This document shows, piece by piece, positions 31-31,857 of a stretch of DNA of 64,000 bases (position 1 is its first letter; each line of letters opens with the position of its first letter). The DNA comes from Callorhinchus milii (taxonomy: Eukaryota): positions 9,114,001-9,178,000 of the forward strand of contig NW_024704758.1 in assembly GCF_018977255.1 (NCBI RefSeq), in the 5' to 3' direction. The notes under the pieces are model-generated. The model searched no databases and was not told where the DNA came from. It saw nothing but the letters and a program-made list of their open reading frames with translations. A program made the translations under genes and the position numbers.

Positions 31-145
31 ATGTTGGACTCGTATGACTACAGCAGTTGTGGACCTGGACTCATTCTGTACAGCCCCTTGAGTTGGCCAA
101 TGCTCTATGAACAGCTGGATTGGCCCAATCCTGAAGATTACGGAG
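31..145 (+). CDS. ELF5: ELF5 first coding exon (MLDSYDYSS...PEDYG)
   Basis: The MLDS start matches ELF5. Acceptor ttttacag ends at 26, 4 nt before the ATG. Donor GAG|gtacta at 146. Phase 1, compatible with the next exon. Confidence 0.75.
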
Positions 146-344
146 GTACTATTTCTTTGTATTTTTATGGTGGTTACAAGTTTACCTATCATAGATGTAG
201 TTTATCTGGGTTAAAAATGGCTTCTACGGGAGAAGTAGATGCTGGAGATTATATCAGATTCTCAACGACTGTAGTTTATGTTTTTCATTGAAGAGCTGAA
301 GGGAAATGGGCTGGAAGCAACACTCAGGAAAAAGTTCTTGTTAT

Positions 345-515
345 GTCAGCTGGGTTTAGTTGGTAGCGCTCTCGGCTCTCAGTCAGAAGGTTGTGGGGTA
401 AAACCACATGTAGGGACCTTGAACCCACAGTTTAGGCTGACAGCGTTGTTGGAGCACCACCATTAAAGTGAGGTGCTGGTCTGCTTATTCAGGTGGATAC
501 TAAATATCCCACGGC
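345..515 (+). mobile_element. Decayed ancient tRNA-head SINE (DeuSINE/SacSINE1-like)
   Basis: ggtagcgctctcggctctcagtcagaaggttgtggg...ttcaggtggatactaaatatcccacggcac resembles the Deu-domain SINE consensus as recalled. Related decayed pieces lie near 1553-1625, 2540-2700, 21690-21810, 49870-50030 and 59040-59150. Confidence 0.55.
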
Positions 516-1115
516 ACCTCGTCTCTCTTATTTTTTCCCCTCTCTTAAAGGTGCTGAATCATCCTGGAGGCATCGACTGCTCTCCAATGACTCATAATCA
601 TTCCTTTATGGCTAACCCAGGCAGTGAGTGTAGGCAGTGAGTGCAGGCAGGCTATTTGAGCTACTTGACTGCGGATGCCATCACAGGTCTCATTGTTATC
701 AATACAGACTTTCTTGCCAGTGCATTGAGGTGATGTAGGACATAAGAAAGGAGAAGTGTGGTTTTGGCAGGAGTGACAGTATATATCTAAAAGCATTATA
801 AGCAATGCAAACATACAGCATTCCAAGCATTTTATTTAAAACGGATTAACTGTGAGTATGCTGTAAGATGAATAGCTATGGGAATGCTCTAAGCCAAGAT
901 AGTTTGCCTACAGAATACACAGCCACTTTATGGTATTCTCTTTTGAAGCATCCTCCCAACGTGAAAGATTCTGTAATCAAAAACAAGGATTCTTTATTTG
1001 TTAAGTTGTTGTGTTCAAAGATTAGTTAGATGTGGAAAACACTTGGGGATTTTGATAGAAGATGTTTGTTGTATGATCCTGACGTGCGTTGATATAAGAT
1101 GAATTTTGTTTTCAG

Positions 1116-1349
1116 TTTCCAACCCATCCTGGACCTCGATTCTTCCTGAGGAATGGAGCAACAGACATGTTTGGGAGTGGCTGCAGTTCTGCTGTGATCA
1201 GCATAAACTGGATGCAAACTGCATCCCTTTTGCCCAGTTCAATGTCAACGGCAGACAGCTGTGCAGCATGACTCAATCTCAGTTCATCTCTGCAGCTGGA
1301 ATTTATGGAGAAATCCTTTACAATTCCCTGCACCAATCGCAAAGCAAAG
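1116..1349 (+). CDS. ELF5: ELF5 PNT/SAM domain exon
   Basis: Encodes [29 protein letters not shown]...GRQLCSMT...[10 protein letters not shown], close to the ELF5 PNT domain. Acceptor ttgttttcag, donor AAG|gtaatg. 234 nt, phase 1-1. Confidence 0.93.
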
Positions 1350-2368
1350 GTAATGGTTTTATTTGATGACTTTGGCGACTCCACCAGATGAAATGTTTGT
1401 TTGGGAGGGAAAAGAAAGGTATTAAATGGGAAGAAGCAAACTAGGCATTTCTGACAATCATAATGCAATAAAGGATTCACAGGGAAATGCTGATAGCTCA
1501 ATGGGTAAATGCATAAGATCATACCCCGACTCGCCAACAAGCTCCCTCAGTCAGTGTCAGCCTAGGTTATCATTTCATATCGTCACGTGGAGCTTAAACC
1601 CACAACGTTTTGACCCAGGGACAACATGATCCCAGCCAGGCCAAACTCTCACAGATACTTGAATTGTTATAGACCTATGCCACTGAAACCTTCAGATCAG
1701 GAAGCTGTGGACTAATAGTATTGGTGTGTCAGACACCTCTGATCTCAGAACGGGATCCCTCTGGGCACATGAAATTCTGCAATAATGTTGAAAATGAGCT
1801 CATTTGTTTGTGGGTCACTGCATCCATAAAACATTTAGAGCCAACAGTCTTAATTAAGACCGTAGATTAAAATGGTTTCTTTGCTTCATTCAGCAGATCT
1901 CCCTCTGGTGTGCGACCCTGTTGACAAAGAACTTCATATCGATGAAAGTAAGTAAACAAGTCAAGCACTCGACTGAAATGTTTGCATTCTGGACATAAAT
2001 CTCTTCCAAAAATACTTGGACAGAGAGGTTGGGGAGCCAGTGGAGATTAATGAGGAAGTGTGATTGGGTGGGGTGAATGACTGGAGGATAGTGGAGCCGA
2101 GGGAAGATAGGACGCGGCGGGTGGCCGGGACCATTGGAGTCAAGGGAGGATGGATTTAATAGGTTTGTGGAGCTTGGTGCAGGAGAGGACATGAATTGCA
2201 CAATTCTGGATGGTCTGCAGCTTGAGTAAGAAGGGCTGGGGAGTCCGGTGAGCAGGAAGTTGGTTTAAAAGAGACAAAAATGATTATTATTTAAACTAAC
2301 CCTAGTGAATGTTCAACTATACCTTTTTACTTAAATTTAAGGGACTTTAAATTTGGAACAAAACGCAG

Positions 2369-2419
2369 GATGTTTCGAAGGAAGCCAAGAGCAGAGCATT
2401 CCTGCAAAAAAACAAGCTG
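2369..2419 (+). CDS. ELF5: ELF5 51-nt linker exon (GCFEGSQEQSIPAKKQA)
   Basis: cgcag| acceptor and strong CTG|gtgagt donor. Open, phase 1-1. Size matches the small linker exon recalled for mammalian ELF5. Confidence 0.7.
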
Positions 2420-3264
2420 GTGAGTGAGCCTGTTCCTGTTGGAACACAGTGCAAACTGACATATTTACGCTGGCGCTGGAAGCTGTTTGAGCTCAGCTTA
2501 GTCATCCGAATCTTCATTTTGATATTGTAATCATCATGTTAATAGAGTGCCAGGGGATCTTTAACGTTGACCTGAACAGAGAGATAGGATGTTGGGTTAA
2601 CGTATCAAATGAAGCACGGCACCTCCAACAACGCAGAGGCCTCCCCAACACTGAGGCAAACGTGCTGCCAACTAAACCAGGCTAACGCCTCAGTAACCCT
2701 GGGCTCCGGAAGGTAAAAAATCTGGAGGGATTATAAAGTATGATCAACTAATAGAGAGATTTCTGACAGATTAGATTTTAATCATCTGTTCATTTGAATA
2801 GCTTGATCTTTGGTAATGCCTCACCTTTGGTTGATTTGGTTGTGTCACGAAACCCTGCTCAACAAGTCAAAGTACCAGTCTACAAAGTTAGATAATGATT
2901 TCATGTGAAAAGAGTTTTCACATTTTTTTCATGACAGTGATTATTTGAGCTGAGGTAACCAGGCTGCCCAAGTGTCTGTGCACAAACTCATTAATCTGTG
3001 TGTTAGGCGTTGATCCTGTCGCTGAGGTTAGCTGTCACTACTGTAACCTGAACAATTGGTCCTTGTTGTGGAAAGCAAACCACATTCCCAGAAAAGCTCA
3101 TTGTTCTAGCTGCAGTGCAAAAGATAAGCCAAACTAATCATGAAATGAAATGTTACACCTGAACACGAGAGAAGTACAGGATCCAATTTAACTCTTTTGA
3201 ACACTGCAGCGGGCAAATACCCTAAAGCTCTGTTGGCATGTTTATACCCACAACTAAACACCAG

Positions 3265-3321
3265 GACAAGCCAGTGCCTACATAACCTTAAGAAGCTGCA
3301 TGACTTCAACCAATAAACCGG
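3265..3321 (+). CDS. ELF5: Tentative ELF5 57-nt linker exon (GQASAYITLRSCMTSTNKP)
   Basis: caccag| acceptor with a poor pyrimidine tract, donor CGG|gtaaat. Open, phase 1-1. The only phase-compatible candidate I found for the second linker exon. Confidence 0.4.
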
Positions 3322-4822
3322 GTAAATCAGCTTTGTATTGTATCTTAGAAAGTGTCAGTTCCTTGTATATATCTAATAAATAATAATAAATAAACTTTGA
3401 ATTTGATATAGCGCTTTTCATGTTTCTAGGTATAACCTTAACCTTATAATTACTAATTAATTAATTAATTAATTAATTGGTTAGGTTAATTGTGTAACCT
3501 TAACCAACCTAGTTTTGTACCTCAGGGCTGTTCATGATTGAGAAACCTGGCCTGCTATTGTATTTCAGGAAGTGGAGCGTGGTTTACATGTGGTTTAGTT
3601 AATTGAGATAAAACAGTGAGCTGTCCTGCAGACTCGATGAGCAATAAACACATAAGAAATTATCCTTCCTCCCTTCCTCTTCCCGTTTGGTTCCCAATAT
3701 CAATTTATTTATTATTTTTATTTCCCCATCGACCCCCTTTCAAGCAATTGATGAAGTTCAGTCTAAATAGAATTGTCGTCCAGAATTATCAGCCTTTTTA
3801 GAGGAATCTAATAAATGAAATAAATGACTTCCATTGCAGAGGTGATCTGACACATATTTGAATTGATTAATTGTCCTCAGCTCTTCGGGGGGCATTCGCC
3901 TAGAACACAATCAATTGGTTCCCCCATTTCAACTCTCCTCATTGACTCCTCTCTGCGTCTCTTCCATTATTTTCCCTCCTCGTCTCCTTGTGTCCAAAAT
4001 GGTTTCTCTCTGGCTTATAGCACAGCTCCAACAAATTTACCATGTAAATAGCAGAATAAATAACCGCCTTCCATAAACTAAGTTAATAAGTAACCGGAGC
4101 CTCTCCTTTTTGACTTGTAGTTAATAAATACATAAAAATAGATCGTCTCATGAACTGGTAAACAAATAAATAATTTCTCTTTTTTGAAGCTAATAAATAT
4201 GTAAAAAGTACTCTAACATTAGCAATATCAGTTACACAGCCACCGCGGATCACTGAGTTCGGTTATTCACTCTCTGCTGTCTTAAAGTTGCATTCAATGG
4301 CTATTTTTGTTAATTGCATTTATGAGCTCAATTCAGCCGGTGAAGCCACTGCCTAGTGTGAGCTGTTTCGTCCTGGAAAGTCCTAGGTTCAATCGTTAGT
4401 CTGCGTTGAGTTCTCTAGTTCCCTCTGATCTCAGCTGGAGCAGCAGTAGGTATGCAACAATAGACTGAACTCAGACATGGAAGAGGTGGCTGGGAACGAG
4501 AAAATCATTAAGTAATTAATACCATGGCATTCAACAACGACAACAACAACTTGCATTTATATAGCGTCCTTCACGTCGGACGGTATCTCGGAGGGCTTCA
4601 TATAGTTTTTAAGTAGCTATACTGCAGTAGATTAAGACGTTGGTCCTTTAAATCCTTTCCTTAGTTTGTTCCTCCATGTGCTACACTTGACCTGGAATCG
4701 TTGATGTAGTACAATAGTTGATGTTGGCTCTGGATGCCTCTAATTGGAAAGTGCTCCAACATGTAACACATGCAAGTCATTCTGGTAACGCAAATGTTTC
4801 TGATCTCTGGTTTCGCCCTCAG

Positions 4823-5018
4823 GTTTACAAAGTCATCATCTCTGGGAGTTTATCCGAGATCTCCTCCTCTCACCAGAGGAAAACAATGACGTTTTGGAAT
4901 GGGTAGACAGGAATGAAGGAATATTCAAAGTTTTAAAATCTGATTCTCTGGCAAAACTGTGGGGTCGTAGGAAAAAGAACGAGCGGATGACCTACGAGAA
5001 ACTGAGCAGGGCCTTGAG
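4823..5018 (+). CDS. ELF5: ELF5 ETS domain exon ([20 protein letters not shown]...[11 protein letters not shown])
   Basis: Classic ETS sequence with the ELF5-type [10 protein letters not shown]. Acceptor gccctcag, donor GAG|gtaatc. 196 nt, phase 1-2. Confidence 0.95.
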
Positions 5019-5828
5019 GTAATCGTGCTTTGCTTCTCCAGCAAACAGCAGCACCTTTGGTCCAATTTTATATAGAAAAGAATAAATGCACATCCATTGC
5101 AGTGTGTAAGAAGAGGTTAGAGACATGAGAGAGTGATGGGTTGAACTTCTATCTCGGACTAAATACTATTCTATTATTGCAAAATTTCAGATTGTCTAGA
5201 ATATGTCAATTTTTAAAAATTGAATTTAATACAATCTTTAATTTTGAAGCCGGATTTCTGTAAAGTTCTTTTCAGAAGCTACAATGGTAAAAACTAAATT
5301 CAAAATGTTTCCCAAATTCTGCAATCTCTAGAAATCTGAAATGCTATGTTAATAGAGGAAATCTAGACCCAGGTGGAAATTTACCCCTGAGGGATGTCTA
5401 CATTTTTGGAGATCTGCTCATGTGCTTAATTTAATGTTACCACAATGATTCACCTTCATACACAAATCACAAAGCTCTGCTGAAATGTCTGACACCTGAG
5501 ATCAAAGTGCCCAGAGGGATAGTCTGACTGAATATCTCCAGGTTCATGTGCCCATATGAAACTATGAAATTATATACGCCAAAATTATACCAGCCAAGTT
5601 TCGCACGCAAAGTATGCCGTCAATTCGCTTTACAGTATATCCTGTGAAGTGCTTTTGAGATGCCTCAATGATGAGATGCCTCAAGGATTATTATTATTGT
5701 TATTTTTATTATTAATTCACGTATGATTGGGACAGTGAATAAAGGGAGATGACTTATCGCAAGATCACAACACATAAACCAGATCCTTGTTGGATCAAGA
5801 TGTAATTTCATTATATTTTGCTTTTCAG

Positions 5829-5913
5829 GCATTATTATAAAACTGGGATTCTGGACCGAGTAGACAAGAGGTTAGTGTACAAGTTTGGAAGGAATGCTTA
5901 CGGCTGGAGATAG
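5829..5913 (+). CDS. ELF5: ELF5 last coding exon ([27 protein letters not shown])
   Basis: ETS C-terminal strands. Acceptor gcttttcag, stop TAG at 5911-5913. AATAAA at 6522 is a candidate poly(A) signal. Confidence 0.95.
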
Positions 5914-6636
5914 AAGGATCTCTGTCTGTAAATGCAACTATGTTTGAATGAAGTGAAGAGACATTTTAGTGTGTATTGGAACCATCTTCAGACCAGGCAC
6001 TAATGGGCGGCAGTGGTCCAACCTACCTCAGCTACCATCATACTTCTACTTGAAATGTTGCATGGAGATGGAATTTAACTCTTTGTTTTCACTGTTATGA
6101 AGCTTTTCATGAAGAATATAGCATATGAAGAACCAAAGCATTCAAAAACCTGAGTATGAACAGAATATCACACATCCTATTTCAAGTTGTAAATACTATC
6201 TTAGATACTCAGAGGAGTCCATATATAACAGGTGTTAAAGCCTACTAACAAATGCCTGGATTTTTGTTACTTTGTTAGATAAATTTTGGTTATGATGATC
6301 ACATTCTGTTCATAACTTTCAGATTTTACACTGCTTACCTTTACGGTGTCCACGTGAGCAGAGTTTACATCCCAGAATGGCTAGGTAGTTCTCTGTCACA
6401 TGGGTATTGAATGTATATGCTAAAAGGAATGCATATGCTAAAATAGTAACATACTGTATATGAATGCTAGAAACTTTTTATAAATTACTTTTATTTTTAA
6501 GCACAATATAGATCGAGCAAAAATAAAAGCACTTTTTCTATCAAATATAGTCTTCATTTTCATTCGTAGTTTTGAGTAACCATCTGCATAAACTTGCATT
6601 GTACTTTTTAACATTAACTTGTAATAGCTATTCATC

Positions 6637-6960
6637 TGGAGCCCTGTACCTTAATGGTAAGAGCACTCACCTCGTAAGTGAGAGGACCTGGATTTGATTC
6701 CCAGGCAGGGTGAAACACTGGGTAAGTTTTCTTACTCCACTCCCCTCTGTTCACCTGTCAGTAGGTGTTAGTCGATTGGCGGATTGCTTGTCCGGGGGTA
6801 ATAATCCTTTCAAAAAACAAAACATGTGGTCATTCAATCCACCATTGTTTGTGGGACGTTGCTGTATGCAAATTAGCTGCTGTGTTTGTCTACAAGATAT
6901 TTGAGATGTCCTCCTAGCATGAAAGGCTCAACATCAAATGCAAGGATCTTTTTATTTATC
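6637..6960 (+). mobile_element. tRNA-derived SINE with L2-type tail, diverged, long subfamily
   Basis: Head tggagccctgtaccttaatggtaagagcactc...gatttgattccc and tail aaatgcaaggatcttttt, colinear with the copy at 37494. Confidence 0.85.
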
Positions 6961-7598
6961 ATCCACATACCTAAATATTCTAACACTCATCACATCACGG
7001 TGATCAATATTGTGGGCAGCAGAGGGCCCAGCTTGTGAAACTCCACTAATCAGGGCTGTTACTGCAACCTTAGGCGTTTTTTAAAAAACAAGTGAAGAAA
7101 CAAATAAACCACTTTTCCTGGTAACGACTTGCAGTTGATGATTAGTCACTGTGTAAAGATATACTTCCTGGCCTTTGTCTTGCACTTCACAACACTGAAC
7201 CTGTGTCTTCTTATCTCGCTGTCCTTGTGATTCAGAGAATATTATTCTGCTTTGCTGTATCCCAATAAGCCCCATTCCGGGATGCCTCTTTGTGAGGAAA
7301 GAGAGCGCTAACTTATCCAGCTGTTCCCCCAAGTTGCATCCTTCTAACTTTAGAGATCAGACTTGTTTGCCTGCTCTGTAGTGTGTCTAGCTTCCTTACG
7401 ATGTAGTGACCAGATTACAAAATACATCAGATGTGGCTTGATCGGGCACGGCAAGAGCAAGTTTTATCCCAAATAAAAAAAAGCTTTTAAATATTTTATT
7501 ATTTCTGCAGAAATCTACACTCATCGGCTACTCAATAAAGTAGTGCTTTAGTAATTGTCCGCCTGTGCAGATGAAGAATTTAGTTGCAAATATAGTTC

Positions 7599-7631
7599 TG
7601 TGCAGTCCAGCTTGACCACGAGAGGGCAGCA
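7599..7631 (+). promoter_or_regulatory. Extended CTCF binding site
   Basis: Core CCACGAGAGGGCAGC (7616-7630) matches CCASYAGRKGGCRS with one mismatch. It is preceded by the upstream module TGCAGTCC (7601-7608). Confidence 0.65.
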
Positions 7632-8099
7632 TCTTGTAAAAATGTAACCAGAGCAGGGAATGGATTGAGAGTTTCCAAGCGTTCAATAACAACAACTTCA
7701 ACAACAACTTGCATTTATATAGCGCCCCTCACGTAGGGGAAGCATCCCATTCAGTTAGGACTGGCACATGAATCCTAAAATGTAAGAGCAGGGAAATGAG
7801 AAATCGTTTAAATTGAGAGGAAAAAAAATAAGATTAAATGAAAACTATAAAGGAAAGAATTAAATAGCGCATAAATAATAATAATAATAATCCTTGTATT
7901 TGATATAGCGCCGGATAGACATCTCAAAGCACTTCACAGAATACAATGTAAAGTGAATCGACTGTATATTTTGTGGGCGAAATTCTTCATTACAAATAAT
8001 TCATCATAAATAATGAAGAAATAAAACGAAGTTGAACAAGAGGCAAAATTAACTCGATTGAACAAAACCAACTGAAAATGTTGAAGAATAGGGATTATG

Positions 8100-8325
8100 C
8101 TGTCCACCTGGCCAGGCTATGAGAGTATCACTCACAGTTTGTTCTGTGGTTAAGTACATGTGTGGCTGTTAGTTTTTACACGATAAAGAGGCAGGTCACC
8201 ACATCAGCTGTCACTGCAGAGACTAGAAGAACCAAATGCAGTTCCTGTTATTTCAGACTTCGCTTCATGACCTGAAGCCAAGCAGATGAGCAGCTACTCT
8301 GAAAAACACACTCTGCAAGAAAGAG
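8100..8325 (+). promoter_or_regulatory. RAG1: Candidate RAG1 promoter and non-coding exon 1
   Basis: E-boxes CACCTG 8105, CAGCTG 8205, CAGATG 8283. RUNX TGTGGTT 8145 and ACCACA 8198. GATAAA 8182. Donor GAG|gtaacg at 8326 could splice to the acceptor at 10434. Confidence 0.5.
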
Positions 8326-8794
8326 GTAACGTAGACGTCGTCGATTTTATTAACCTTTCTTCAACTCCTGAATGAAACTTTATGCAGCATTTATATTAGA
8401 AAACTTCCAACCAATATTCGTATATCTTATTAACTACGCGCCAATAAATGATGTGTACACATAGAAGACTGCACAAAAGGACCGATTGGATTTTTTTTCA
8501 GGTTTCTTTCATTTTGTAATAAAATTACTTGGTTTAAATGAACACAATCTGCTAAAGCGCTCAGCGATAAGAATGTTATGGTTTGTTTAAACTGGGTTAG
8601 AATCATTTTATAACAATCTTAGACTTATTTGCGAGAGTTTGCAGTTCCACTGTAAATGCTCTGGGACGATACCCTGCGTCAGGGACTCAAGTTATTGTTG
8701 TTGTAAACACCAAAGCCAGCAATAGTCTCTTGTGTGATGCATCATTTTTACTCTTACTAAGAAGAATGAGAAGAGAGAGAAGGGATGTGGACAC

Positions 8795-9120
8795 GTGGAG
8801 TCCTGGAGCTCAGTGGTTAGAGCCCTCGCCTCACAAGCGAGAGACCTGGGTTCGATTCCCGGCAGGGCAAAACCTTGGGCAAGTTTCCTTACTCCACACG
8901 CCTGATAATAATCCCTCAAGAAAAAAAACAATAACGAAATTAGTCACTTCAATCCAAGACTGTTTGTGGGACACTGCTGTGCGCAATTGGCTGCCGTATT
9001 TCGCCCACAAATATACAGTCAATTCAGTTTACAGTATATTCTGTGAAGCGCTTTGAGAGGTCTAGAAGACATGAAAAGCGCTATATCAAATGCAAGAATT
9101 TTTTTCATTATTTTTATTAT
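8795..9120 (+). mobile_element. Full-length tRNA-derived SINE in putative RAG1 intron 1
   Basis: A box GCTCAGTGG, B box GGTTCGATTCC, conserved body, tail gtgaagcgctttgag...agcgctatatcaaatgcaag followed by TTA-rich end. Confidence 0.92.
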
Positions 9121-10453
9121 GTACAATGCAGAATTGGTTCCAATCGGGACCGATTTCATTAACGTTTACAGTTACAGGCAATTTTTGGAAGAGTCAAATT
9201 CCTGTTGCTTGCTCTTAATAGAACTTGCATGATTGAAACTGGAAGCAGATATATAAGTTTGTAATCCATACATTGTTGACTGCACAGATATTAATTCATT
9301 CTTTACATACGTTAGAATAATTATACGTGATACGAAAAAACTGTTGTGGTTTAATGCATGCTTTCTTAAGAATATGCCGAGGGGAAAAAAAATCAAGTAC
9401 CCCATCTGAAAACACGATCAAAGTAGATTTGGTTTAAATCTTTACCTTTTTTTCCTATCTATTGCTGGCTATCTTGTATATCTCACTAAAGCGGTTTGGA
9501 AATGTCAGAGATTACTTCACATCAAACGTGTTGCATCGTGCCAAGTTCAAAAGTGGTAACTGGTTAATACCAATCACAGTACTACTCCTACGCTCGAGTG
9601 TAGGAGCGTAGGAGTAGTTCTGTGGATAAGCCCTCAGTATATCAGACATAAGATATGCTGTACTGGTGTTAGGAGCTAGATGGTGCAGCTGCATCAGCTA
9701 ATGCTTTTCTCTTCCAAGCAGCTTGTTGAAATCCTTGCTGGTGTTAGTATGCAACATGACAGGCTCCTAAATGCCACAATGAGTCACAGGCAAAATTATC
9801 CTCAGACAGTCATCTCCATCTATATTCGACAGAAGTATATTCGCAGGGAAAAAAAAAGCCCTGCTTTGATGCATTGCAGTGTGAATCACAAAATTTGCTG
9901 CATTTGAGGGTTGGAGAATAGAATCCCCAAGGACTTCAGGAATAAATGAGAGTGCATTATAACGGGTAAAGCTTAAGTCTTGGATCATCGTTATACACTC
10001 GATGGCACTTCTCTAACCAGGGGAAGGATTTTACTATATTCTGCTGACTCCATTTGATATTCATTTTTCACTTTGTGGCTGTTTGCGGGACATCGCTGTG
10101 CACACATTAGCTGTGGCGTTTGCCTAAAGAATGTAGTCACCACGCTTTACCTGTAATTCCTGTGAAGCGCTTTGAGACATCTTGATGATGTGACAAGGCC
10201 CAATATGAAACGCAAGGGTCGTTATCAGTAGAAGAGCAATCTTAGACTCATTTCCATAAGGCTTGAGTTTTCATTTGCCCTGCAGCAGTTAACGACTGAT
10301 TTTTGATTTCAGATTTCTAGACGATGAAAGATTAAAGTTTAGCTGTTGTAAACTGATGCGTGATAAGGCTGAGTGTTTTGCTGTCGAGAGTGAATTTTAA
10401 TTTTAAACTGTACGTCTTTTTGTGTCTTTGTTAGGTGTCAGCATTTGAAACAA

Positions 10454-13400
10454 ATGGAGATGCCATTGTGCAACATGCCTGAAAGGACGAGGTGCACAGA
10501 GACTGCGCCTTTCAGAAAAATCGAATGGGAAGACAAAATTTCAAAGGCAATACATAATGCCACGGAACCTTTAGTTACCATGGCTGCCCATAGCATGCAG
10601 TTTAAACTTTCTCCATCTCAAACCCAGACAATGGAGACCTTACCTTTGGAGACATTGCCTCTGGACAAGAAGACTTTGGAAGATAAGCCACAATACAACA
10701 GGTTTGTTCAGAAAAGCAAACCTTTGGAGTACACGCCAACGAAAACTCAGCTTCCTGAATCCAAGCAAGTGAAATCCAAATCTTTAGAAGAACACAAATT
10801 GCATTTGCAGAATCTCTGCCGCATTTGCGGAGGTTCCTTTAACACCAGCCGCTATGACATGAAGTATGCAGTCAGTGGCCCAGTCGATGACGTCACCCAA
10901 GATGTTCTTAGGAAAATGGGACATGGGGATTGCTTTTGGCCTGAGCTCGTCCATAACACCTTCAAAGTAGATGTCAGGAGAGATATGGAGACCGTTCACC
11001 CCACCCACTTCTGCCACAGCTGCTGGCGCATTGCAATTCAGATGATCAACAATACAAACAATGAAGATGCATTTTTTCCCATCAATAAATTTATGCACTG
11101 GAAGCCTCATTCCAACCACTGTAGAGTTTGCAACTCTTCAAAAGGAATTCGCAAGAGAAAGGGTCTGGGAAGAAGTCCGCAGGTCCCCAAAAAAGCAAAG
11201 GTTGCCATCGACCTTCCGATCAGACCAAAGGTTGTTAATAGAAGAGATCAGATGAACAGCACAAGCATTATGTTGGCTAAAAAAGTGGTCAACTGCAAGA
11301 AGCTCCATCTAAGTCCAAAGCTCCTTGTGGATGACTATCCCCACCACTTTCTCCAGTCGGTCTCATGTCAGGTTTGTGACCATCTACTTGCTGACCCTGT
11401 GCAATTACCATGCATGCATCTGGCCTGCAGAACATGCATTTTCAAATGCTTTGCAGTTCTCGGAAAGTATTGCCCAGTTTGCAGGTTTCCTTGTTGTTCG
11501 GCAGAGCTCACAAGCCCTGTCAAATCTTTCAGTCACGTTCTGAATTCCCTTGTGGTGAAATGCCCAATGGCAGACTGCAAAGATGAGATGAGACTAGATG
11601 AATATTCTCACCATGCCCAAACTCACAAAGAGACCAGAGGGAAATATGATTACTCACCAACAAACAAGGGTGGTCGGCCAAGGTTACACTTGTTGTCTTT
11701 AACACGAAGAGCTCAAAAGCATCGCCTGCGAGATCTCAAGCATCATGTTAAAGCTTTTGCAGAGAAAGAAGAGGGTGGAGACGTGAAGTCGGTTTGTCTC
11801 ACTCTGTTTCTACTTGCGCTGAGAGCTGCAAACGAACACAGGCAGGCAGACGAGCTAGAGGCTATAATGCAGGGAAGAGGATCAGGGTTGCTACCTGCAG
11901 TCTGTCTTGCCATTAGAGTCAACACATTCTTGAGTTGCAGTCAATACCATAAAATGTACAGAACAGTCAAAGCAACAACTGGGAAGCAGATCTTCCAGCC
12001 ATTGCATTCACTCCGAACTACAGAGAAAACTCTGTTGCCTGGTTATTTTCCATTTGAATGGCAACCTCCACTAGAAAATGTCTCTACTAACACTGAAGTA
12101 GGAATAATAGATGGTTTGAGTTGTTGGCCCCAGTGCATTGATGATTATCCGATGGACACAATTTCCCGACGGTTTAGGTACGATGTAGCACTTGCTGCAA
12201 CTATCAAAGATCTTGAAGAAGACATCTTGCAAGGTCTGAAATCACACGGAATGGATGAGTTTCAGAGTGGGCCATTCACTGTTGTGGTAAAGGAGTGTTG
12301 CGATGGAATGGGGGACGTCAGCGAAAAGCACGGATGCGGTCCAATTGTCCCAGAAAAGGCAGTGAGGTATTCCTTCACAATAATGAGTGTGAGCGTCACG
12401 GGTGAAAACAATGAAAATGTCAAGGTATTTGAAGAATTGAAGCCAAATTCTGAATTGTGCTGCAAACCTCTTTGCCTCATGTTGGCAGATGAATCTGACC
12501 ATGAAACCCTGACAGCAGTGCTGGGCCCACTCATCGCCGAAAGGAAAGCCATGAAGGCAAGTCATTTAATCCTTGAAATTGGCGATTTGCTCAGGTCTTT
12601 TCGATTCATCTTCCGAGGCACAGGGTATGATGAGAAGCTTGTGCGTGAAGTGGAAGGCCTTGAGGCCTCAGGCTCCATCTATGTTTGCACATTATGTGAC
12701 TCCACTCGTAGTGAGGCCTCAGTGAATTTGACCTGCCATTCCATAACCAGGAGCCACACAGAAAACCATGAGCGCTATGAAATTTGGCGATCAAACCCAT
12801 ATCGCGAGTCCCCTGAAGTCCTCCGCGATAGAGTGAAAGGCATCTCAGCCAAGCCTTTTATTGAAACTCAGCCCTCCATTGATGCCTTGCATTGCGATAT
12901 TGGAAACGCAACGGAATTCTTCAAGCTCTTCCAAGATGAGATTGGGGAGCTTCACATCAAGCCCAACCCGTCCAAAGAGGATAGGAAAAGGTGGCAAGTA
13001 CTGCTCGATCAGCATTTGAGAAAGAAGATGAATCTGAAGCCTATCATGAGGATGAATGGAAACTTTGCCAGGAAACTGATGACCAAAGAGACCGTAGAAG
13101 TAGTATGTGAATTAATTCCGTCTGAGGAGAGGCGAGAAATTCTCAGAGAGCTAATGTCACTTTACGTCCTGATGAAACCAGTGTGGCGCACCACGTTTCC
13201 TATCAAGGAGTACCCAGACCTTGTGCACCAATACAGCTTTAATTCCCAAAAGTTTGCAGACCTGCTCGCTACAAAGTTCAAGCACAGATATGAAGGGAAG
13301 ATCACAAATTACCTGCACAAAACTTTGGCCCACGTTCCTGAGATCATCGAACGAGATGGTTCCATAGGAGCTTGGGCGAGTGAAGGAAATGAATCGGGCA

Positions 13401-13621
13401 ACAAGCTTTTCCGACGTTTTAGGAAAATGAATGCGAGGCAGTCTAAAAGTTATGAGCTGGAAGATATCCTGAAGCACCACTGGCTGTACACTTCCAAATA
13501 TTTGCAGAGGTTCATGAATCAACACAATGAACTGAAACAATCAGTGTTTGCTTCCACACCATTTGACAGCAGCAGCCAAAATGATTCACCACCAGAGCCA
13601 CATGACTCCATTGATTTTTAA
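10454..13621 (+). CDS. RAG1: V(D)J recombination-activating protein 1, 1055 aa, intronless CDS
   Basis: CRICG central domain, C3HC4 RING, zinc finger A, nonamer-binding [18 protein letters not shown], catalytic D (12302), D (12629), E (13391), CTLC and HKTLAH zinc ligands. Acceptor tctttgttag ends at 10434. First ATG is 10454; the ORF track starts at an upstream TTG. Confidence 0.99.
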
Positions 13622-18353: not shown

Positions 18354-19916
18354 TCATTCAAACAGCCTCTTCACAAAGCTCTTCTTCATCGGTGTCTTCT
18401 TCAGACTGGATGGCGACTTTTTACGCGGGGATTTCATTGGCGTCCGTTTCATTATTTTTATCTTCTTCTGCAGGGTTTCAACTCTTTTCTCAATACAATG
18501 AACATTGCAAAAGTACTTGGTCTTCTCCTGAGAAAGGTGTATCAGCTCTGACTCCGAGAGACCCATACACTGGGCATGTACCCAGTGCCCACCACCTCCT
18601 CCACTGGAGCAGAAGATCATAGCCGGTTTATTGAGTTCAGTGGAGTAGTAAGGAACCCAAGTGTTGACGTTTACACTACAGGTGACAATGCACTTAATCC
18701 AGTAACCTTCCTCATCACCATTATCTAAGTATATTTCGTCGTCGCTATAATCATGGGTTTCAACGACAAAGCGAAATTCTTCTGAATCTTCGAATGCGCT
18801 AGATTCCTCTGGATCAGTAAAGGATTCCTGGCTGACAAGAATGCGGCTTCTCCCCTCTGGCTGTCCGAAAGTTGCAATGTAGAAGTAATTTGCTTCAGCC
18901 GTATCTGGCTTGTTTTCCCCAGGAATGCCCATTAATACCGCTCGGTTTCCCATGTCACTTCCAAACCAGCTCTTGCTGGCTCTGAGGTCACTGGTCCATG
19001 CCGGGGGTTCCTTGTCCAGGATCTGAATGTTATCATTTTCAAGTAGGATGGTGTTGCAAGCCATTCGCTTCTGAGTCTCTGATTCATAGCCACCGACAAT
19101 TATAAACTCATTGCTGCCAGCCTGGGTCACTATTGCACTTGATACTGAGATGCCATTATTGAGTACTGTGCAGGTTATACTCGGATGTGGGCCTAACAGA
19201 TCAACCTGTAGGCTAAGCAATCGTGGAGGACGGTGATTGGATCCCATGGAATGACCCCCAAATACGTAGATGGTTTCATTTTTTGCTACTGACGCGTGGA
19301 ATGAAAATCCATCATTGATCTCTGGAAGCACATGGGCTGTGCAGTGGCTGGTGCTCAAGTCTATTATGTATACATGTGGCGTACAATCCAATACGCTGTT
19401 CCAGTTTTCTGTGGTTCTTTGTCCAGGTGGCCGGTAATATCTACCTCCGACCAAGATACACATGGTTCGTCCTCTGCTCTGAACCACATTAATGGTGTGA
19501 CCATATCTTCCTTGGGGGACATTTCCTTTGAGATCTTTTTCAATGCAACAGAGTGATGTCTTCTTACTACCGGTATTACTAACCATCATGAGGTACAGTA
19601 GATCAGACAACTCATTGTTTGGCATTCTGCCGCCATGAATGAGGTAAAGAGGGCTTTTGGATTCCGAGGGATCTGAGTAATGAGTAATTGCAGGACAACG
19701 TAGCGGTGGCAGGTAACAAGAGTCACTGGAAAATGAAACTGCTTTGAGTTTCAGGTCTTGTTCTTTCAAGCGGAGGAGGAAGACTCCAGAGGAGCAGGAT
19801 CTTTTTGGCCATCCTTTCTGGCCAAAAAGAAACACTTCGCCATTGAAATTCATCAGGGAGAACCCGGGATGTATCAGTGCCCCATTGGCGCTGGGTGAAA
19901 CCATTTGCAGAGTCAT
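18354..19916 (-). CDS. RAG2: V(D)J recombination-activating protein 2, 520 aa from the canonical MTLQM start
   Basis: MTLQMVS..LIHPGFSLMNF..FGQKGWPKRSC Kelch core, acidic hinge FEDSEEF, PHD finger GYWIKC..C..HWVHAQC..YFC..H, C-terminal KKSFVKRLFE. An in-frame upstream ATG lies at 19976. Confidence 0.99.
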   Translation of the reverse strand: MTLQMVSPSANGALIHPGFSLMNFNGEVFLFGQKGWPKRSCSSGVFLLRLKEQDLKLKAVSFSSDSCYLPPLRCPAITHYSDPSESKSPLYLIHGGRMPNNELSDLLYLMMVSNTGSKKTSLCCIEKDLKGNVPQGRYGHTINVVQSRGRTMCILVGGRYYRPPGQRTTENWNSVLDCTPHVYIIDLSTSHCTAHVLPEINDGFSFHASVAKNETIYVFGGHSMGSNHRPPRLLSLQVDLLGPHPSITCTVLNNGISVSSAIVTQAGSNEFIIVGGYESETQKRMACNTILLENDNIQILDKEPPAWTSDLRASKSWFGSDMGNRAVLMGIPGENKPDTAEANYFYIATFGQPEGRSRILVSQESFTDPEESSAFEDSEEFRFVVETHDYSDDEIYLDNGDEEGYWIKCIVTCSVNVNTWVPYYSTELNKPAMIFCSSGGGGGHWVHAQCMGLSESELIHLSQEKTKYFCNVHCIEKRVETLQKKIKIMKRTPMKSPRKKSPSSLKKTPMKKSFVKRLFE

Positions 19917-20104
19917 GGTCGCACCGGGCGGGCGGGCGGGGGGGGTGACTGTGTCGCCTTTGGATGCAAAAGACATGATTAAAAAATTGGGGTAAAAACA
20001 GACAAGAACGTGTTGGCAGGTTTAATTGCTCTGTGAAAAAAAAATGAATGGCACCCGCCCAAAGCCAAGGGCAATGAGAGAGAAAAAACACAAAAAACCG
20101 CCCG

Positions 20105-20145
20105 ATTGGGCGCGAAACCCGCCCCATTGGGCGCGAAACCCGCCC
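20105..20145 (+). repeat. Tandem duplication ATTGGGCGCGAAACCCGCCC x2, period 21
   Basis: Exact 20-mers at 20105-20124 and 20126-20145, with a partial third unit just upstream. Confidence 0.95.
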
Positions 20146-20205
20146 AAATCTGGGACAGCAGATTGTTCCTTGAGCGGGTGGCGATGGCCGGCGCCGGACC
20201 CCACC

Positions 20206-20312
20206 GCTTGGCCTGATGGGAATTGTAGTCGATGGTGGGGGGGGGGGGGGTGTGTGGGGGAGGGAGAGGAGGGGAGAGGGGCCGGCGAGCCACTACATGT
20301 CCCGGCGAGCAC
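20206..20312. promoter_or_regulatory. Two divergently oriented ZNF143/Staf (ACTACA-TCCCA) motifs
   Basis: Minus strand GACTACAATTCCCATC (20215-20230) and plus strand ACTACATGTCCCGGCGAGC (20292-20310). Confidence 0.75.
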
Positions 20313-20329
20313 CGCGCCGGCCGGTTGCT

Positions 20330-20513
20330 AGGAGCCGGGAGCTGCGGGCAGGAGGAGGAGGAGGAGGAGGGAAGAAGGAGGAGCAATGGAGGAGAGACGT
20401 GAGGGCCCGAAGCCACGACCGAAAAAAAGGTACCAAGAACCCCCCCCCCCGCCACGCACACACGCAAAAAAATAAAAATAAAAACAAGCCCCTAAAGACA
20501 AGTTCTATTAAAA
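20330..20513 (+). other. IFTAP: Candidate non-coding exon 1 of IFTAP/NWC
   Basis: Lies downstream of the plus-strand ZNF143 motif and ends at donor 20430 or 20514. The start is approximate. A non-coding first exon is required by the acceptor at 30167. Confidence 0.45.
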
Positions 20514-20751
20514 GTGAGTGACGACTCTAAGTAAATAAATAAATAAATAAATAATAAAAAAAAATGGTGGCAAGAAAGCAGCTCCGTTGGGGCCCTCGAT
20601 CAGCAACGTCTGGGCCTACATCATCCATCCATCCATCTCCACACACACACCCACCACACACACACACACACACACAGTCAATTCACTTTATATCGTCACT
20701 GTGTTCGGCTTCCAGACGCCGCTCAACCACCTGATGTTGATAAGGCGCTAA

Positions 20752-21163
20752 ATAATAACAATAATAATAATAATAATAATCATCCATCCTCCTCCTCCTC
20801 CTCCTCCTCCTGGCATTTGATACAGCTCCTCCTCATCGCGTCTCCGAGACGTCTCACGCGCGGCTTTGGCGCTCCCAAGCGAATCGACCTGCGTGTGCCT
20901 TGCGGGCGGAATCGAAATTTTTTGCGAAGCGCCACGGCCGAGGCCGCGCCGCGGCGTCCCCGCAAACAGCCGCGGACTGAAGTGACCCGATTTCTTTTTG
21001 CTCTCTCTCTCTCTCTCTCTCTTGAGGGATTATTATCGGGCGTGTGGGCTAAGGAAACTTGGCCAAGGTTTCGACCCCCACCCCCCCACCCCCCGCCGGG
21101 AATCGAACCCGGGTCTCTCACTTGCAAAGCGAGTGCTCTAACCACTGAGCAACAGGACTCCAC
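20752..21163 (-). mobile_element. Full-length tRNA-SINE nested in an older plus-strand SINE tail
   Basis: Intact head (ggaatcgaacccggg...aaccactgagcaacaggactccac) and (AAT)n tail at 20752. The outer copy is split into ...gataaggcgct (to ~20748) and aaatgcgaggattatt (from 21164). Confidence 0.8.
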
Positions 21164-21172
21164 AAATGCGAG

Positions 21173-21173
21173 G

Positions 21174-21219
<46 letters not shown>
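21173..21219 (+). repeat. (ATT)n microsatellite, tail of the outer SINE
   Basis: About 15 ATT units seen directly. Nearby: (CA)n 20640-20675, (CCT)n 20786-20810, (CT)n 21002-21021. Confidence 0.95.
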
Positions 21220-21220
<1 letters not shown>

Positions 21221-23854
21221 CTTTGTGACCACAGGAGACAAACAGGAGCAAAGCAAAGGCATGGGATATGAGTTTTTTTCAAAAAAAGAGTTAAAAGCCA
21301 CCCATACCATTCTGCTGATAAGAATAACAATGTTTACACAAACAACATCCCCGGGGGTATGTTTTTAATGGATAAGGTTTGAAGGCACTGTATAGGTCAG
21401 CAGATCCTGAACTAACTAGTGACCAAACATGGGGGATGGTGGGGTGGGGGGAGAGGTAAGTGGGGTCTCCTTGGAACTCTGCTGGCTCCAAGATGACAAT
21501 GATTGCAAAGGAATATCGAAATCAAGTCAACCCTTTTCGATGGCCCAGCTCCGGAGCCAGGCAGGTCCCCGGTACTCTAGGTTTCCGCTGATTATAGACC
21601 AGACATGATGCCAGCAATGACTTTGGATGAGGAAGTAAGATTGGCTAGGACACTGGATGAAATTCTCTATTTCTTTGAAATAGTACTAAGGGACTTTTCA
21701 ATTCCATCTGAAGGACCAGAATAAGTAGATCAGGACCCTTATTAGAAGGACGGCACGTTTAATAGTATTCTTCTTTATCAGACCTGCACTGAAGTATCAG
21801 ACTGGATTGCTAGCTCCTCTGACCCAATGGAAGACTGACACAAGGCATCTGGCTTGACTTATCTGGAGTGCAGCATTGACTATTATTTTCGGCAGGTTCA
21901 GGTAATTGATGCCATTATGTATATCTAATACATCAATTACAATAAGTTTATCAAATGACATTGTAACGTTAATTTTGAAATATTATTTTAAAACATACTA
22001 GTTGGTCTTTTAATTTTACCTAATTTATATTGTTTTTCATCACAGCTATTATTGGAAGATAAACCACGTTTGCTAAATTATTTCAAAGAACCTGTTTTAA
22101 TCAATGAATCATTGCATAACATTTAATATTTTGTAGCTTGCAGTGAATGTTTGAACATTGTGATCTTCTCAATTCCATTAGTGCTGCTCTGTTGTTCCAT
22201 AACTGTGAGCATGCAGGTTTGTCCTGTATTACTAATTTAAAAGTCTTTTGTCTGCCTTTGATTTCTGCCATTATGCATCACCTCCTCATGAACAGTGTAT
22301 TTCATTTCTCATTTGATTTTTCATCAGCCTGTGTGCTACCCATAGATGAAGACCACATGAAGCTTTGAAAGTGGTTTCACCTTTACAAGAGAACACAGGT
22401 ATTAAATTAACTACTCTTTGGGCCTGCCTGCTGCGTTTTAGTGGCAAACCTAAAGTAAGGTTCATTCAAGCGGGGGATCATAGAGGTACATATTGCACCA
22501 AGTAATGGTGTTAACCACTGAGCCACCTGCTCTGCTGAGTAATCAATTTTTCAGGTCTTGTTTACTTCGACAATCATCCCTTTAAAGAATCTAGCTGGCT
22601 TTAAACAACCACAGCGCTATAGCACCTGGTCTGATCCTTTATTCAGTAAAGCTGATGATAATGTTAGCTCTTCATTTCTTGTATACTTGTTTTCTGCAGC
22701 TTTTGTTCAATCTGAAATTTAAACTCTTGAATTTTGTATTAAATGTCCTGACTGACATTATTATTGTTCCCTTAAAAGCCAGCAAAGAACCATGGTATGC
22801 TTAATACTTGTAGATGGTTGACTGGGAACGGCTAAACTGCTACTTGTATGAGTTAAGAAAGAAAGTTTGTATTAGGACTCGGGGATCAATATCTAACTCT
22901 TTATTGTGAAATGGATATTCTATATCCTGGGCATATACTATTATGTGAGCTTGTGGTGTCCTTGGAGTCTAATATGTATGGAATAGTTGTGGGAGAGAGA
23001 ACCGCCTAATCTGTGATTCGTCTTACTATAATGTAGCTTTCGGAAATGGATTTTTATAGATTTGTAACAGAGGATCAAATTAGAGAAAAAGTAATTCCTG
23101 ATTTGTGGATAAATTGTGGTGTTTTGCTTTGCCACTGCTGATAGTCTATGTTAAATGTATTTCAAGCACTCTTCTCCCTTTCCACTGTAAATGTTCTACC
23201 ACTGCCAATGGACTCATCAGTGAAGTTTGTACATTTTGAATTAATCCATTTCTAATGCAGGGTTTCTCATACTTACAACTTTTGGACACACAGCACTATT
23301 TGTTTTTAGTCAAAACTGATCAGAGATTGTAGTTGTTGAGTGGTTGACATCTAAAGTTGCACACAAAAAAGACATAGTCATTCTCCCCCATTTATGTCAT
23401 GCAGACTTACAGTTGTGCTTTTTGGATTGTAACAATATGTAACTTTATAGTAAATACTATATTATCCTGGCTACTGAAGGAAAAATAACTAGAATCTTAG
23501 TCCATAAAGTACTGTATCTTCAATTGAATAGTTGTTTTCCCTATCTTTTTTCAAATTGTCCCCACAAATATCTGTAACTTAATAGCAACCACACTTGCAA
23601 TGACTCAATGATTACATGTATAGATGAGGTTTGTTCACAGAAACGTTTTTCCTGGATAAGAAGTCAGTTATACAGCTACGCCTCAATTACATTAATTATA
23701 ATGTAATTATAATTAATTGCTTTTGATAAGTCCACTACAATAATCTTAGTTCAATAGAGTTGTAGTAGATTTTATGCTGTAAATTTTTTTTTAAGCATAG
23801 GTTAACTAACAGGTAAATACAAATAGACATAACATTATAGCAGGTCATCCTTAC

Positions 23855-24120
23855 CTCTAGTATGAAGATAATGTTGATATCTAATGGATCTCTTTAGGCA
23901 ATGTTATCTGCGCCCTTTAAAAGGCTGATCTTGCTTGTAAGAATTAGAAGGCAAAACATTAGATTAACGTGCAGTTTACAGGCAATTTAGATGATCGTGA
24001 AAGTTTGCAGCTGGTGTAGACAGTACCGAGCACTTCCCAGATGAGGATAACTGTCAGTCTGCGCAGAACAAATGCAGCAGAGATGTGGTATGTTGTAAAG
24101 GTGCAAGATAACAAGGACAC
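23855..24120 (-). promoter_or_regulatory. RAG2: Candidate RAG2 lymphoid promoter and non-coding exon 1
   Basis: Minus-strand donor AG|GTAAGG at 23854. Upstream cluster: CAGCTG 24008, TTCCCA 24034, CAGATG 24038, overlapping GATA/Myb GATAACTG 24046, TGTGGT 24084, AGATAA 24106. Confidence 0.35.
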
Positions 24121-27100: not shown

Positions 27101-28804
27101 GGTTAATTTTTAGAGTGGCTTTGGTTTTCAAGGAGATACTGTATTATACAATATATACTGCCGTTAACAGAATATAATTTTGCACAATTCCAGCAGAACC
27201 TTTGAACAATGTGACATTTCACGTCACCTGGCACTGAGTTTTCCCACAAATACATAGTATTGACAGCAATTATCGGTGAAGCACTTTGAGATGTTTGGAC
27301 ATTATAGTCATTCTATCAAATGCAAGAATTCTTATGTTATAGAACAAGCTGAAGTGTTCATTAGAGATATACACATACTCCAATCCAATAGGTTATTTCA
27401 AGCATAGAAAATATTTATTTACAGGCTAGGCATTCTGGCGTTTCTCCCTTAGATAATTCTGTTTGGACTGCAGAAAAAATAGTTGTTCCTTGAAATATAA
27501 TCACTTACCTTATTTTTTCACTTCAGGATGTATCACAGTAATCTAAGATAGGCCGTGGTTGTTAAAAGCTTGTTATTGTCCCTTTAAGTCATCCAGGTGA
27601 GTTTACCCCAATGCCTGGAAGTTGAAGAGGTGCGTGCAGTCCTGCCCTCTTCGAGCCGTTTTTTGATCGGTCTGGCTTCAAACAACGTAAATTCCCAACT
27701 CCATGCTGCTGTAGTAAACGCAAACAAACTTGGCACAGTACAACTGTGGTGCTGTGATTTATTAGAAATTGCCTTAACATAGTAAAAAAGTTGCATTCTT
27801 GCATTGCATTATTGTTAAGACTTAATCACTGTGAACAGTAACTTTAAGGTGCAGGTTCTCATGATGGTTTCTATTGAGTCTGAGCAAGTTATACACTGTC
27901 TTTCCCTGGCTGTTTCATATTCTTTATGTTGCATTTTGACATACTTTACAATTTGTTTGTGGTTGTTACTGTTTGAAGAGCTATTCCAAGAAAGGGAGCT
28001 TTGACAGATGTTAAAAAAGCTTACGTTTAGACCACATATAGAAAAGAAGCTTCCGTTAACTGCTTTATTGATCCCCATTATGCCTAAACTTTAATCTTTT
28101 ACTTTATGATTTTTTAAAAACTAAATTGGTATTAATCAACTTTCATTTGCACCTTAGTCCGTATTGTTGAAAATACTGTAGGGCTCCCAAACATTACCTG
28201 TTTTTAGCACTCTTAAGATACTACCTATGTGAAGGGCGCTATATTGTTGATGTTGCTATTCTGCAGGCTACAGTTTTTTTAATATTACTATTTGATGTAT
28301 AAATACAGCAAGAAAGTTGCCTGAATTCATGACAACTGAAGTTTTTTGCATCTGATTACGGTGATGCAAGAAGGAGAAAGATATGTTCCTCATAGGGAGG
28401 AGCGTGTTGGAGTAGGTATCCTGCACCGTTTTAGGAAGTCATTGAATTGCTCCCTCTCCCACTGCAGTTTAGTATTTTCCCCTTGCACTATTCCAGCAAT
28501 ACTCTGGCATTGTGCTGAAGTGCCATTTCTATTAACCACACATGCTCCACCCTGAAGAATATCAACAATTTGGGATCAGGAAGATGTATTTCAGTCGTTC
28601 TGCTAGCTCTCTTGTACTCTTCCCTTATTCTTCAGTCAATTTTTTTTTACACTCCCATCGTTTTGCTTATAGTTTTACCAGTTTTATTACTTTTACAACT
28701 GCTATCATAATCGGTACCTAAATTTGTGCTTATCTACATTATTTTTTCCACTTGTCTGCGAAAGCTGCTGTGTTACTTTTCTGCCGGAATAGTGCAAGAG
28801 GAAA

Positions 28805-28940
28805 ATACAACAACAATTTGCATTTACTTAGAGCCCTTCACGCAGGGCAGCGTCTTGGAGCGCTTAACAGTGGCGGAGTCTGCCGCCAAGCCTGGCGGAG
28901 TGAGAAGGTGACTGTAAGCATGGTTTGAAGAGGATGGTCT
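28805..28940 (-). mobile_element. L2 LINE 3' end fragment
   Basis: (AAC)n-tttgcatttac..cccttcacgcagg..ttggagcgcttaacag tail, similar to the copy at 53808. Confidence 0.65.
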
Positions 28941-30211: not shown

Positions 30212-30311
30212 ATGGAGCAGGAAATAATTCAAGATACTTTGGATAGATTTTGCAGTAGCCACGAGCAAACGTATGATGAATTTCTGGAATCCTTTCTTTA
30301 CTTGAATGAAG
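30212..30311 (+). CDS. IFTAP: IFTAP coding exon 1 (MEQEIIQDTLDRFCSSHEQTYDEFLESFLYLNE)
   Basis: Matches the C11orf74/NWC N-terminal motif (LD.F...HEQTYD.EFL..F). Acceptor ends at 30167, donor AAG|gtatgt. Confidence 0.92.
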
Positions 30312-30827
30312 GTATGTGTATCTGTGAGAATATAATACTGTGTTTAAATAATGATTACGGTTATTGCGAACACTGGTCACTTGATTTTGGCACTCCATTG
30401 CATTCTTGGAAGAACATTGCCATCCTTTAGATGAAAACAAGGTCCTATCTGCTTCAGAGTTTCTCCTGATGTCCTTGACAACAATCCTCCCGATAACTTG
30501 GTCATTCACCTCCTGACTGTTTGTGTCACATCAATGTATCCATGTTGCCTGTGTGTTTTCCTACCAATTATATTCGTTATAATTTACGGTAATTACCATA
30601 AAGTGCTTTCAGACGTTTCAACGTTCCAGGTGTTGTATCAAATGCAAGGTTTTGATATTGATTTTACCAATATGGACTAGTAAATTTATTGCAATATTAT
30701 AGTTAATGACCTAGTTAGAGGGCAGTTTGAGCAGTTGCTGGCTCAAACTGCCCTATGACCAGCTTATTAGCTCCAAAAACTGGCTGTCAAATGGCTTTTT
30801 CATGATGAAATTGGCTTCCATTTACAG

Positions 30828-31797: not shown

Positions 31798-31857
31798 TAC
31801 CACATAGAAACAGGAGTAGGCCATTCAGCCCCTGTACTGATCTGTACCTCAAGTCCA

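Follow-up and report, generated by a model that had tools for sequence, protein, structure and literature searches.

RAG1 and RAG2 are a domesticated transposon, and the site at which it entered its host offers one of the few ways still left to learn how the domestication came about. The arrangement of the locus has been published as a convergent RAG1-RAG2 pair with NWC (IFTAP) as the third conserved gene, and the NWC locus has been proposed by Laszkiewicz, Cebrat and colleagues as the original integration site of the RAG transposon (PMC4157847). On the RAG1 side, the human order, taken from a deletion table, is CAT-ELF5-EHF...COMMD9, PRR5L, TRAF6, RAG1, RAG2, IFTAP, LRRC4C (PMC9408430), which matches the order CAT-ELF5-EHF...PRR5L-TRAF6-RAG1-RAG2-IFTAP assumed in a first-pass annotation of the DNA analysed here. 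That DNA is a 64-kb window of a chimaera, the elephant shark Callorhinchus milii (contig NW_024704758.1, positions 9,114,001 to 9,178,000), free of N runs, and its gene order, ELF5(+) RAG1(+) RAG2(-) IFTAP(+), identifies it as the C. milii RAG locus. RAG1 and RAG2 adjoin each other, converge and carry their full domain sets, and IFTAP lies at the 5' side of RAG2 on the opposite strand, all as in a canonical RAG locus. However, the 5' neighbour of RAG1 is not TRAF6, as in the human and mouse arrangement, but ELF5, in the window as well as in Heptranchias perlo and Amblyraja radiata. A rearrangement breakpoint between the 3' end of ELF5 and the 5' end of RAG1 separates cartilaginous from bony vertebrates, because in Polypterus and human the 3' end of ELF5 abuts the catalase gene, CAT, and not RAG1.

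The C. milii ELF5 gene comprises six coding exons on the forward strand (31-145, 1116-1349, 1894-1947, 2342-2419, 4823-5018 and 5829-5913), with AG/GT boundaries throughout and a TAG stop codon at 5911-5913. Its spliced coding sequence (CDS) of 762 nucleotides (nt) translates, residue for residue, into a 253-amino-acid (aa) UniRef protein of C. milii named 'Elf-5-like', and Pfam finds SAM_PNT (the Pointed domain, 5e-23) and Ets (3e-30) in the product. From the ELF5 stop to the RAG1 ATG there are exactly 4540 nt (5914-10453), with both genes on the same strand; on strand and distance alike the gene models agree exactly with the first-pass annotation.

To place the ETS gene, a maximum likelihood tree was built from 28 ELF5 and EHF proteins, 14 per side, with no ELF3 outgroup or chondrichthyan EHF among them. 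In this tree the ELF5 and EHF clades each receive support of 100/100, and C. milii, Heptranchias and Pristis form a trio (98/90) inside ELF5. The identity of the C. milii domains to tetrapod and coelacanth ELF5 is 66-70% for the Pointed domain and 75-77% for the ETS domain, against 46-52% and 65-69%, respectively, to EHFs. Among solved chains that consist of the ETS domain alone, human ELF5 outscores ELF3; the best match of all is a full-length EHF chain, which spans the Pointed domain too and so is not like-for-like with the ETS-only chains. Judged from these sequence comparisons, the ETS gene beside RAG1 is an ELF5 orthologue and not EHF. The ELF5 group might be expected to lie tail-to-tail with CAT, and in the chimaera the 3' neighbour is RAG1 instead; this missing CAT neighbour is the finding itself and no evidence against ELF5 orthology.

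The gene could also be an old paralogue that was retained solely in cartilaginous fishes, in which case no ELF5 breakpoint would be needed. Room for this is left by the composition of the tree, without ELF3 and chondrichthyan EHF and with the trio's place inside the ELF5 clade not settled, and by NCBI, which calls the Heptranchias and Pristis genes 'ETS homologous factor'. Nevertheless, the two clades with their 100/100 support, the trio within ELF5 and the closer identity of both domains to ELF5 than to EHF all speak against such a paralogue, as do an ELF5-like length of 253 aa and the presence, among the best matches, of only one such ETS protein per cartilaginous-fish species. Hidden paralogy is therefore considered very improbable, and the non-orthologous paralogue that the first-pass annotation had kept in mind is not what tree and domain identities point to, since both place the gene in ELF5. 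The NCBI name 'ETS homologous factor' on the genes of Heptranchias perlo and Pristis pectinata is itself probably an annotation mislabel, as the proteins group with ELF5 and occupy the ELF5 position beside RAG1.

The comparison of sharks, rays, chimaeras and gar that the first-pass annotation had called for recovers the tandem in sharks, skate, sawfish and chimaera, and finds a 10-kb flank free of ELF5 in gar. The sevengill shark Heptranchias perlo (CM068648.1, ELF5 at about 40.47-40.49 Mb, +) has RAG1 on the ELF5 strand, 8.8 kb further downstream. In the skate Amblyraja radiata (CM021385.1, RAG1 at about 17.69 Mb, -), 9.7 kb separate the last ELF5 exon (RHYYKTGNLERV...GWR*) from the RAG1 ATG downstream of it, and the two genes again share a strand. 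C. milii and Heptranchias are strictly collinear in blastn alignments, through the ELF5 exons, the 3' untranslated region (UTR), three intergenic blocks and the RAG1 CDS. Of the intergenic blocks, the strongest (8124-8335) recurs in each of the five cartilaginous fishes under comparison (C. milii, Heptranchias, Heterodontus, Amblyraja and Pristis). In the sawfish Pristis, this RAG1 upstream block is located 6.1-6.3 kb downstream of ELF5, and in Heterodontus the 10 kb upstream of RAG1 align with the intergenic sequence of Heptranchias, beginning 380 bp past the ELF5 stop. Collinear non-coding blocks thus imply ELF5-RAG1 adjacency in Heterodontus and Pristis as well. Given its presence in chimaera, sharks, skate and sawfish, the ELF5-RAG1 tandem is no younger than the last ancestor shared by chimaeras and elasmobranchs.

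The same recurrence excludes a misassembly between 5913 and 10434, a possibility that the first-pass annotation had raised. An assembly artefact fusing two unrelated regions in this interval has nothing in its favour apart from the SINE (short interspersed element) copies found there, which are able to confuse short-read assemblies. Against it, the independent Heptranchias and Amblyraja assemblies have the same adjacency, the collinear flanking blocks of Pristis and Heterodontus span the interval, and the window is gap-free; its probability is considered negligible. The window itself opens just 30 nt 5' of the ELF5 ATG, and no genes were called in the 10-kb upstream ELF5 flanks of Heptranchias and Pristis. 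In Heptranchias perlo, part of the ELF5 Pointed-domain exon (PFAEFNISGSQLCSMTQQQFIS) is repeated in inverted orientation approximately 275-365 bp upstream of the ELF5 start, at 9637-9726 (-) of the extracted locus.

Bony vertebrates differ. In the bichir Polypterus senegalus (CM029055.1), an ELF5-like gene is tail-to-tail with catalase, in the arrangement CAT(+) ELF5(-). Since a basal ray-finned fish and humans have it in common, this CAT|ELF5 junction probably goes back to the ancestor of bony vertebrates. No gene and no ELF5 exon was found in the 10 kb 5' of RAG1 in gar, Amphiprion (clownfish), Dromas (bird) or Umbra (mudminnow). The Polypterus ELF5-like protein has a very long branch (1.47). 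None of the best 120 ELF5 matches comes from gar, sturgeon or teleosts.

The 4.5-kb interval between the two C. milii genes can be divided further. It begins with the probable ELF5 3' UTR (5914-6545, +), recognised from collinear blastn blocks and a scan for polyA signals; it shares two blocks with Heptranchias (5977-6000 and 6072-6223) and has its first AATAAA at 6522 and a putative end at 6545. This is followed by a tRNA-derived SINE copy (6637-6960, +), recognised from dispersed copies in the window and with a tRNA-like head at 6640-6713 (Rfam tRNA), and by a partial, reversed SINE body (7871-7983, -) detected by blastn of the interval against itself and the window. A conserved non-coding block then runs from 8124 to 8325 (+) in the five-species alignment and ends at an invariant AG|GTAA donor (GT at 8326-8327), with conservation falling right after it in all five species. 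This block is probably the RAG1 promoter with a putative non-coding exon 1, as the invariant donor would pair with an acceptor at 10434. Mammalian RAG1 also has a non-coding first exon. What would then be RAG1 intron 1 contains a full-length tRNA-derived SINE (8794-9118, +; tRNA-Val-like head at 8799-8870) and two blocks conserved with shark in blastn (9659-9734 and 9930-10067, +), and a repeat search places a further SINE copy at 10065-10225. In the 10-kb flank of gar the RAG1 upstream block has no convincing match (best E 3e-4 to 0.1, in short stretches of low identity). With the ELF5 polyA region on one side and the conserved RAG1 promoter/exon-1 block on the other, the breakpoint interval may be narrowed to approximately 6.5-8.1 kb, that is, to about 1.6 kb that is partly SINE, provided that the inferred exon 1 and UTR end are placed correctly.

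Together, these observations suggest the following history. The C. milii RAG locus carries a true ELF5 orthologue directly upstream of RAG1 on the same strand, and the last ancestor shared by living cartilaginous fishes already had this tandem. In bony vertebrates (Polypterus and, by gene order, human), ELF5 and catalase meet at their 3' ends instead, and in human TRAF6 is 5' of RAG1. The breakpoint would fall after the ELF5 polyA region (~6.5 kb) and before the conserved promoter/exon-1 block of RAG1 (8.12 kb). As the simplest event, which we infer rather than observe, the ELF5...TRAF6 block would have been inverted once, on the stem of either cartilaginous fishes or bony vertebrates. Taken as a whole, from orthology through the ancient tandem and the breakpoint interval to one inversion as the simplest event, this explanation is considered moderately probable.

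The human genes at 11p13-p12 are oriented ELF5(-)...TRAF6(-) RAG1(+), and reversing the segment [ELF5(-)...TRAF6(-)] sets the 3' end of ELF5 against the 5' end of RAG1 on the same strand, which is the layout of the window. ELF5 orientation is a real but weak test of a single inversion; it is passed, and the opposite human ELF5 orientation would have failed it. Thus, of the first-pass claim of one ELF5...TRAF6 inversion, the part that concerns orientation stands, while its starting point, the human order, does not hold for bony vertebrates in general, because the layouts of gar, Umbra and Polypterus differ from it.

These layouts, with several other observations, weigh against a single step. 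In gar (CM082512.1), EHF (14.30 Mb, -), RAG2 (15.886 Mb, +) and RAG1 (15.897 Mb, -) are on one chromosome; read in the direction of RAG1, the order is RAG1(+) RAG2(-) ... 1.6 Mb ... EHF(+). Umbra (CM082149.1) has a gar-like layout with a RAG2-EHF gap of 1.2 Mb. In both, EHF is on the RAG2 side, the opposite side from human EHF, and in the same orientation as RAG1, and at least two reversals are needed to turn the human order into that of gar and Umbra. In Polypterus, EHF(-) at 6.19-6.23 Mb and the ELF5-like gene at 17.33-17.38 Mb are 11 Mb apart, on the same strand and not head-to-head, as would follow from an independent inversion with a break at ELF5|EHF. A position of TRAF6 directly 5' of RAG1 is confirmed for human alone, from the published table, and in no fish. 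No chondrichthyan EHF is among the best 120 matches to a sturgeon EHF query, all of which are bony-vertebrate EHFs. In addition, an inversion is defined by two junctions, of which only one is seen here, unlike at known inversion breakpoints. A single inversion is plausible but half-tested; if it is true, CAT should adjoin TRAF6, and EHF should lie head-to-head upstream of ELF5, in cartilaginous fishes.

Alternatively, there may have been several rearrangements, either overlapping inversions or a transposition of RAG1-RAG2-IFTAP, with ELF5|RAG1 as one product of a rearrangement-prone region. At least four arrangements exist among the lineages sampled (chondrichthyans, human, Polypterus and gar/Umbra), which speaks for such a history, but a single reversal fits the ELF5 orientation exactly. 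A weaker point against several rearrangements is that ELF5, EHF and RAG1 are apparently on one chromosome in several frogs, as are, for ELF5 and RAG1 only, those of a caecilian and the guinea pig; sharing of a chromosome is, weakly, as expected for intrachromosomal events. We regard several rearrangements as possible, if on the unlikely side. Under the explanation by one inversion, too, the region is rearrangement-prone, and the one-step history is just the simplest of several.

The polarity of the change bears on the site of RAG domestication. The chondrichthyan order may be the ancestral one of jawed vertebrates, with the RAG transposon domesticated where it landed, between an ETS gene of the ELF5/EHF type and IFTAP (NWC), and with the tetrapod TRAF6-RAG1 junction as a later product of inversion; this proposal is a tentative one and rather doubtful. 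The gar and teleost layout is one reversal away from a hypothesised chondrichthyan ...EHF(-) ELF5(+) RAG1(+) and two from the human order, which hints at a chondrichthyan order that may be old. The junction CAT|ELF5 of Polypterus and humans, however, pulls in the other direction. If the proposal is true, an ESE-type ETS gene, and not TRAF6, should be found upstream of IFTAP in RAG-less lampreys, hagfishes or amphioxus. Whichever order is ancestral, there are now two concrete candidates for the ancestral neighbour on the RAG1 side, ELF5 and TRAF6. The first-pass annotation had further placed the breakpoint near the presumed end of the transposon; it does lie at the RAG1 flank, but no relic resembling a recombination signal sequence (RSS) or terminal inverted repeat (TIR) accompanies it. 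A scan for RSS/TIR-like heptamers and nonamers separated by a 12- or 23-bp spacer gave no match in 5914-10453 and none in 19977-30100, and in the whole window three weak matches against 0.8 expected, with nothing above chance. A transposon-end relic is not expected to survive for more than 400 million years.

Of the two sides of the locus, it is the 5' flank of RAG1 that varies. A very tight ELF5-RAG1 tandem has been retained in cartilaginous fishes since before the split of chimaeras and elasmobranchs, and the breakpoint would be no more than about 1.6 kb away from the conserved RAG1 promoter block. This implies that cartilaginous-fish RAG1 requires hardly any 5' flank of its own, which fits reports on mammals, where the known RAG enhancers are upstream of Rag2 (in mouse ASE/R-TEn and Erag/R2B, at 73 and 23 kb, respectively) and have no detectable conservation in amphibians or fishes (PMC8199221). 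The ELF5 introns contain no conserved non-coding elements that would be candidate RAG1 enhancers, as alignment of C. milii with Heptranchias is confined there to the exons and their margins.

The remainder of the window has the expected RAG genes and a repeat-rich background. The RAG1 coding exon (10435-13621, +) is delimited by its open reading frame (ORF), Pfam domains, acceptor sequence and conserved N-terminus. The uninterrupted ORF extends over 10445-13621 (+), and the CDS, 10454-13621, encodes 1055 aa plus the stop. A strong polypyrimidine/AG acceptor has its last base at 10434, 5' of a first ATG at 10454; C. milii, shark and ray RAG1 have the N-terminus MEMPL... in common, and Pfam recognises RAG1, RAG1_imp_bd, zf-RAG1 and RING in the ORF. 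The RAG2 ORF (18354-19976, -) converges with RAG1 and has its conserved start ATG at 19916 (MTLQM...). It runs 20 codons (19917-19976, -) 5' of this start, which is the one that aligns with gar, teleost and bird RAG2, and the ATG upstream of it is probably not used. IFTAP (NWC/C11orf74; 30116-44196, +) was recognised by Pfam PF17722 in two mapped exons, an N-terminal one at ~30116-30220 and a C-terminal one at ~44068-44196, both on the forward strand (E = 5e-11 and 2e-17, respectively). No protein-coding gene was recognised past IFTAP, at 45000-64000, where the longest stop-free segments were inspected and a few of them scanned with Pfam.

Directly 5' of the RAG2 coding exon, the stretch ~20000-21400 has a GC content of 0.485, against ~0.38 nearby, and carries simple repeats, in ORFs that read poly-I, poly-N, poly-E, poly-G and HT, with one SINE head within; it is a likely candidate for the RAG2/IFTAP promoter region. 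The rest of the window contains over a dozen further occurrences of the SINE of the breakpoint interval, whose head both Rfam and ARAGORN call as tRNA. The element is ~300 bp long, with more than a dozen full or partial copies in the 64 kb. Its heads (6640-6713, 8799-8870, 21089-21158, 37497-37568 and 51281-51350) are called tRNA-Ala or tRNA-Val, and its bodies lie, for example, at 8794-9118, 31859-32086, 37494-37887 and 51062-51356. The heads are probably not functional tRNA genes, because each of them is followed by a copy of this repeat's body. Another interspersed repeat has two copies (36175-36660 and 53830-54340) with long overlapping ORFs on both strands and the motif GRAFSH.AP.LWN.LP; the one piece of it that was scanned has no Pfam match.

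Compared with the canonical jawed-vertebrate RAG locus, the chimaera locus is alike in that RAG1(+) and RAG2(-) face each other tail-to-tail and each keep the entire CDS within a single exon, and in that IFTAP is on the 5' side of RAG2 on the opposite strand. It is unlike in the 5' neighbour of RAG1, which is a tandem ELF5 at 4.5 kb where human has TRAF6, and in the distance of only ~1.6 kb between the inferred ELF5 and RAG1 transcription units. The proposal of the NWC locus as integration site asks the same question of which host genes flanked the insertion, and chimaera IFTAP does adjoin RAG2; the proposal is silent on the gene at the RAG1 side, however, for which ELF5 is offered here as a candidate beside TRAF6. 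In the literature found in the searchable library there is no mention of ELF5 beside RAG1, nor of the RAG1 5' neighbour in cartilaginous fishes. What is new is therefore the RAG1 side of the locus, which that literature does not discuss, while the IFTAP/NWC side has already been discussed; apart from this, the difference is one of ordinary synteny and can be seen in public genome annotations. With respect to the human CAT-ELF5-EHF cluster on 11p13 (ELF3/ELF5/EHF subfamily), chimaera ELF5 has the same PNT and ETS domains, falls in the same clade and is of similar length, but in the chimaera and elasmobranchs its 3' end faces the RAG1 promoter and not the 3' end of CAT. Finally, the locus resembles known cases of inversion breakpoints and breakpoint reuse: one adjacency has been swapped for another, most of the sampled species have the genes on one chromosome, the orientation agrees with a reversal, and there are further breaks nearby, at ELF5|EHF in Polypterus and between the RAG block and EHF in gar and Umbra.

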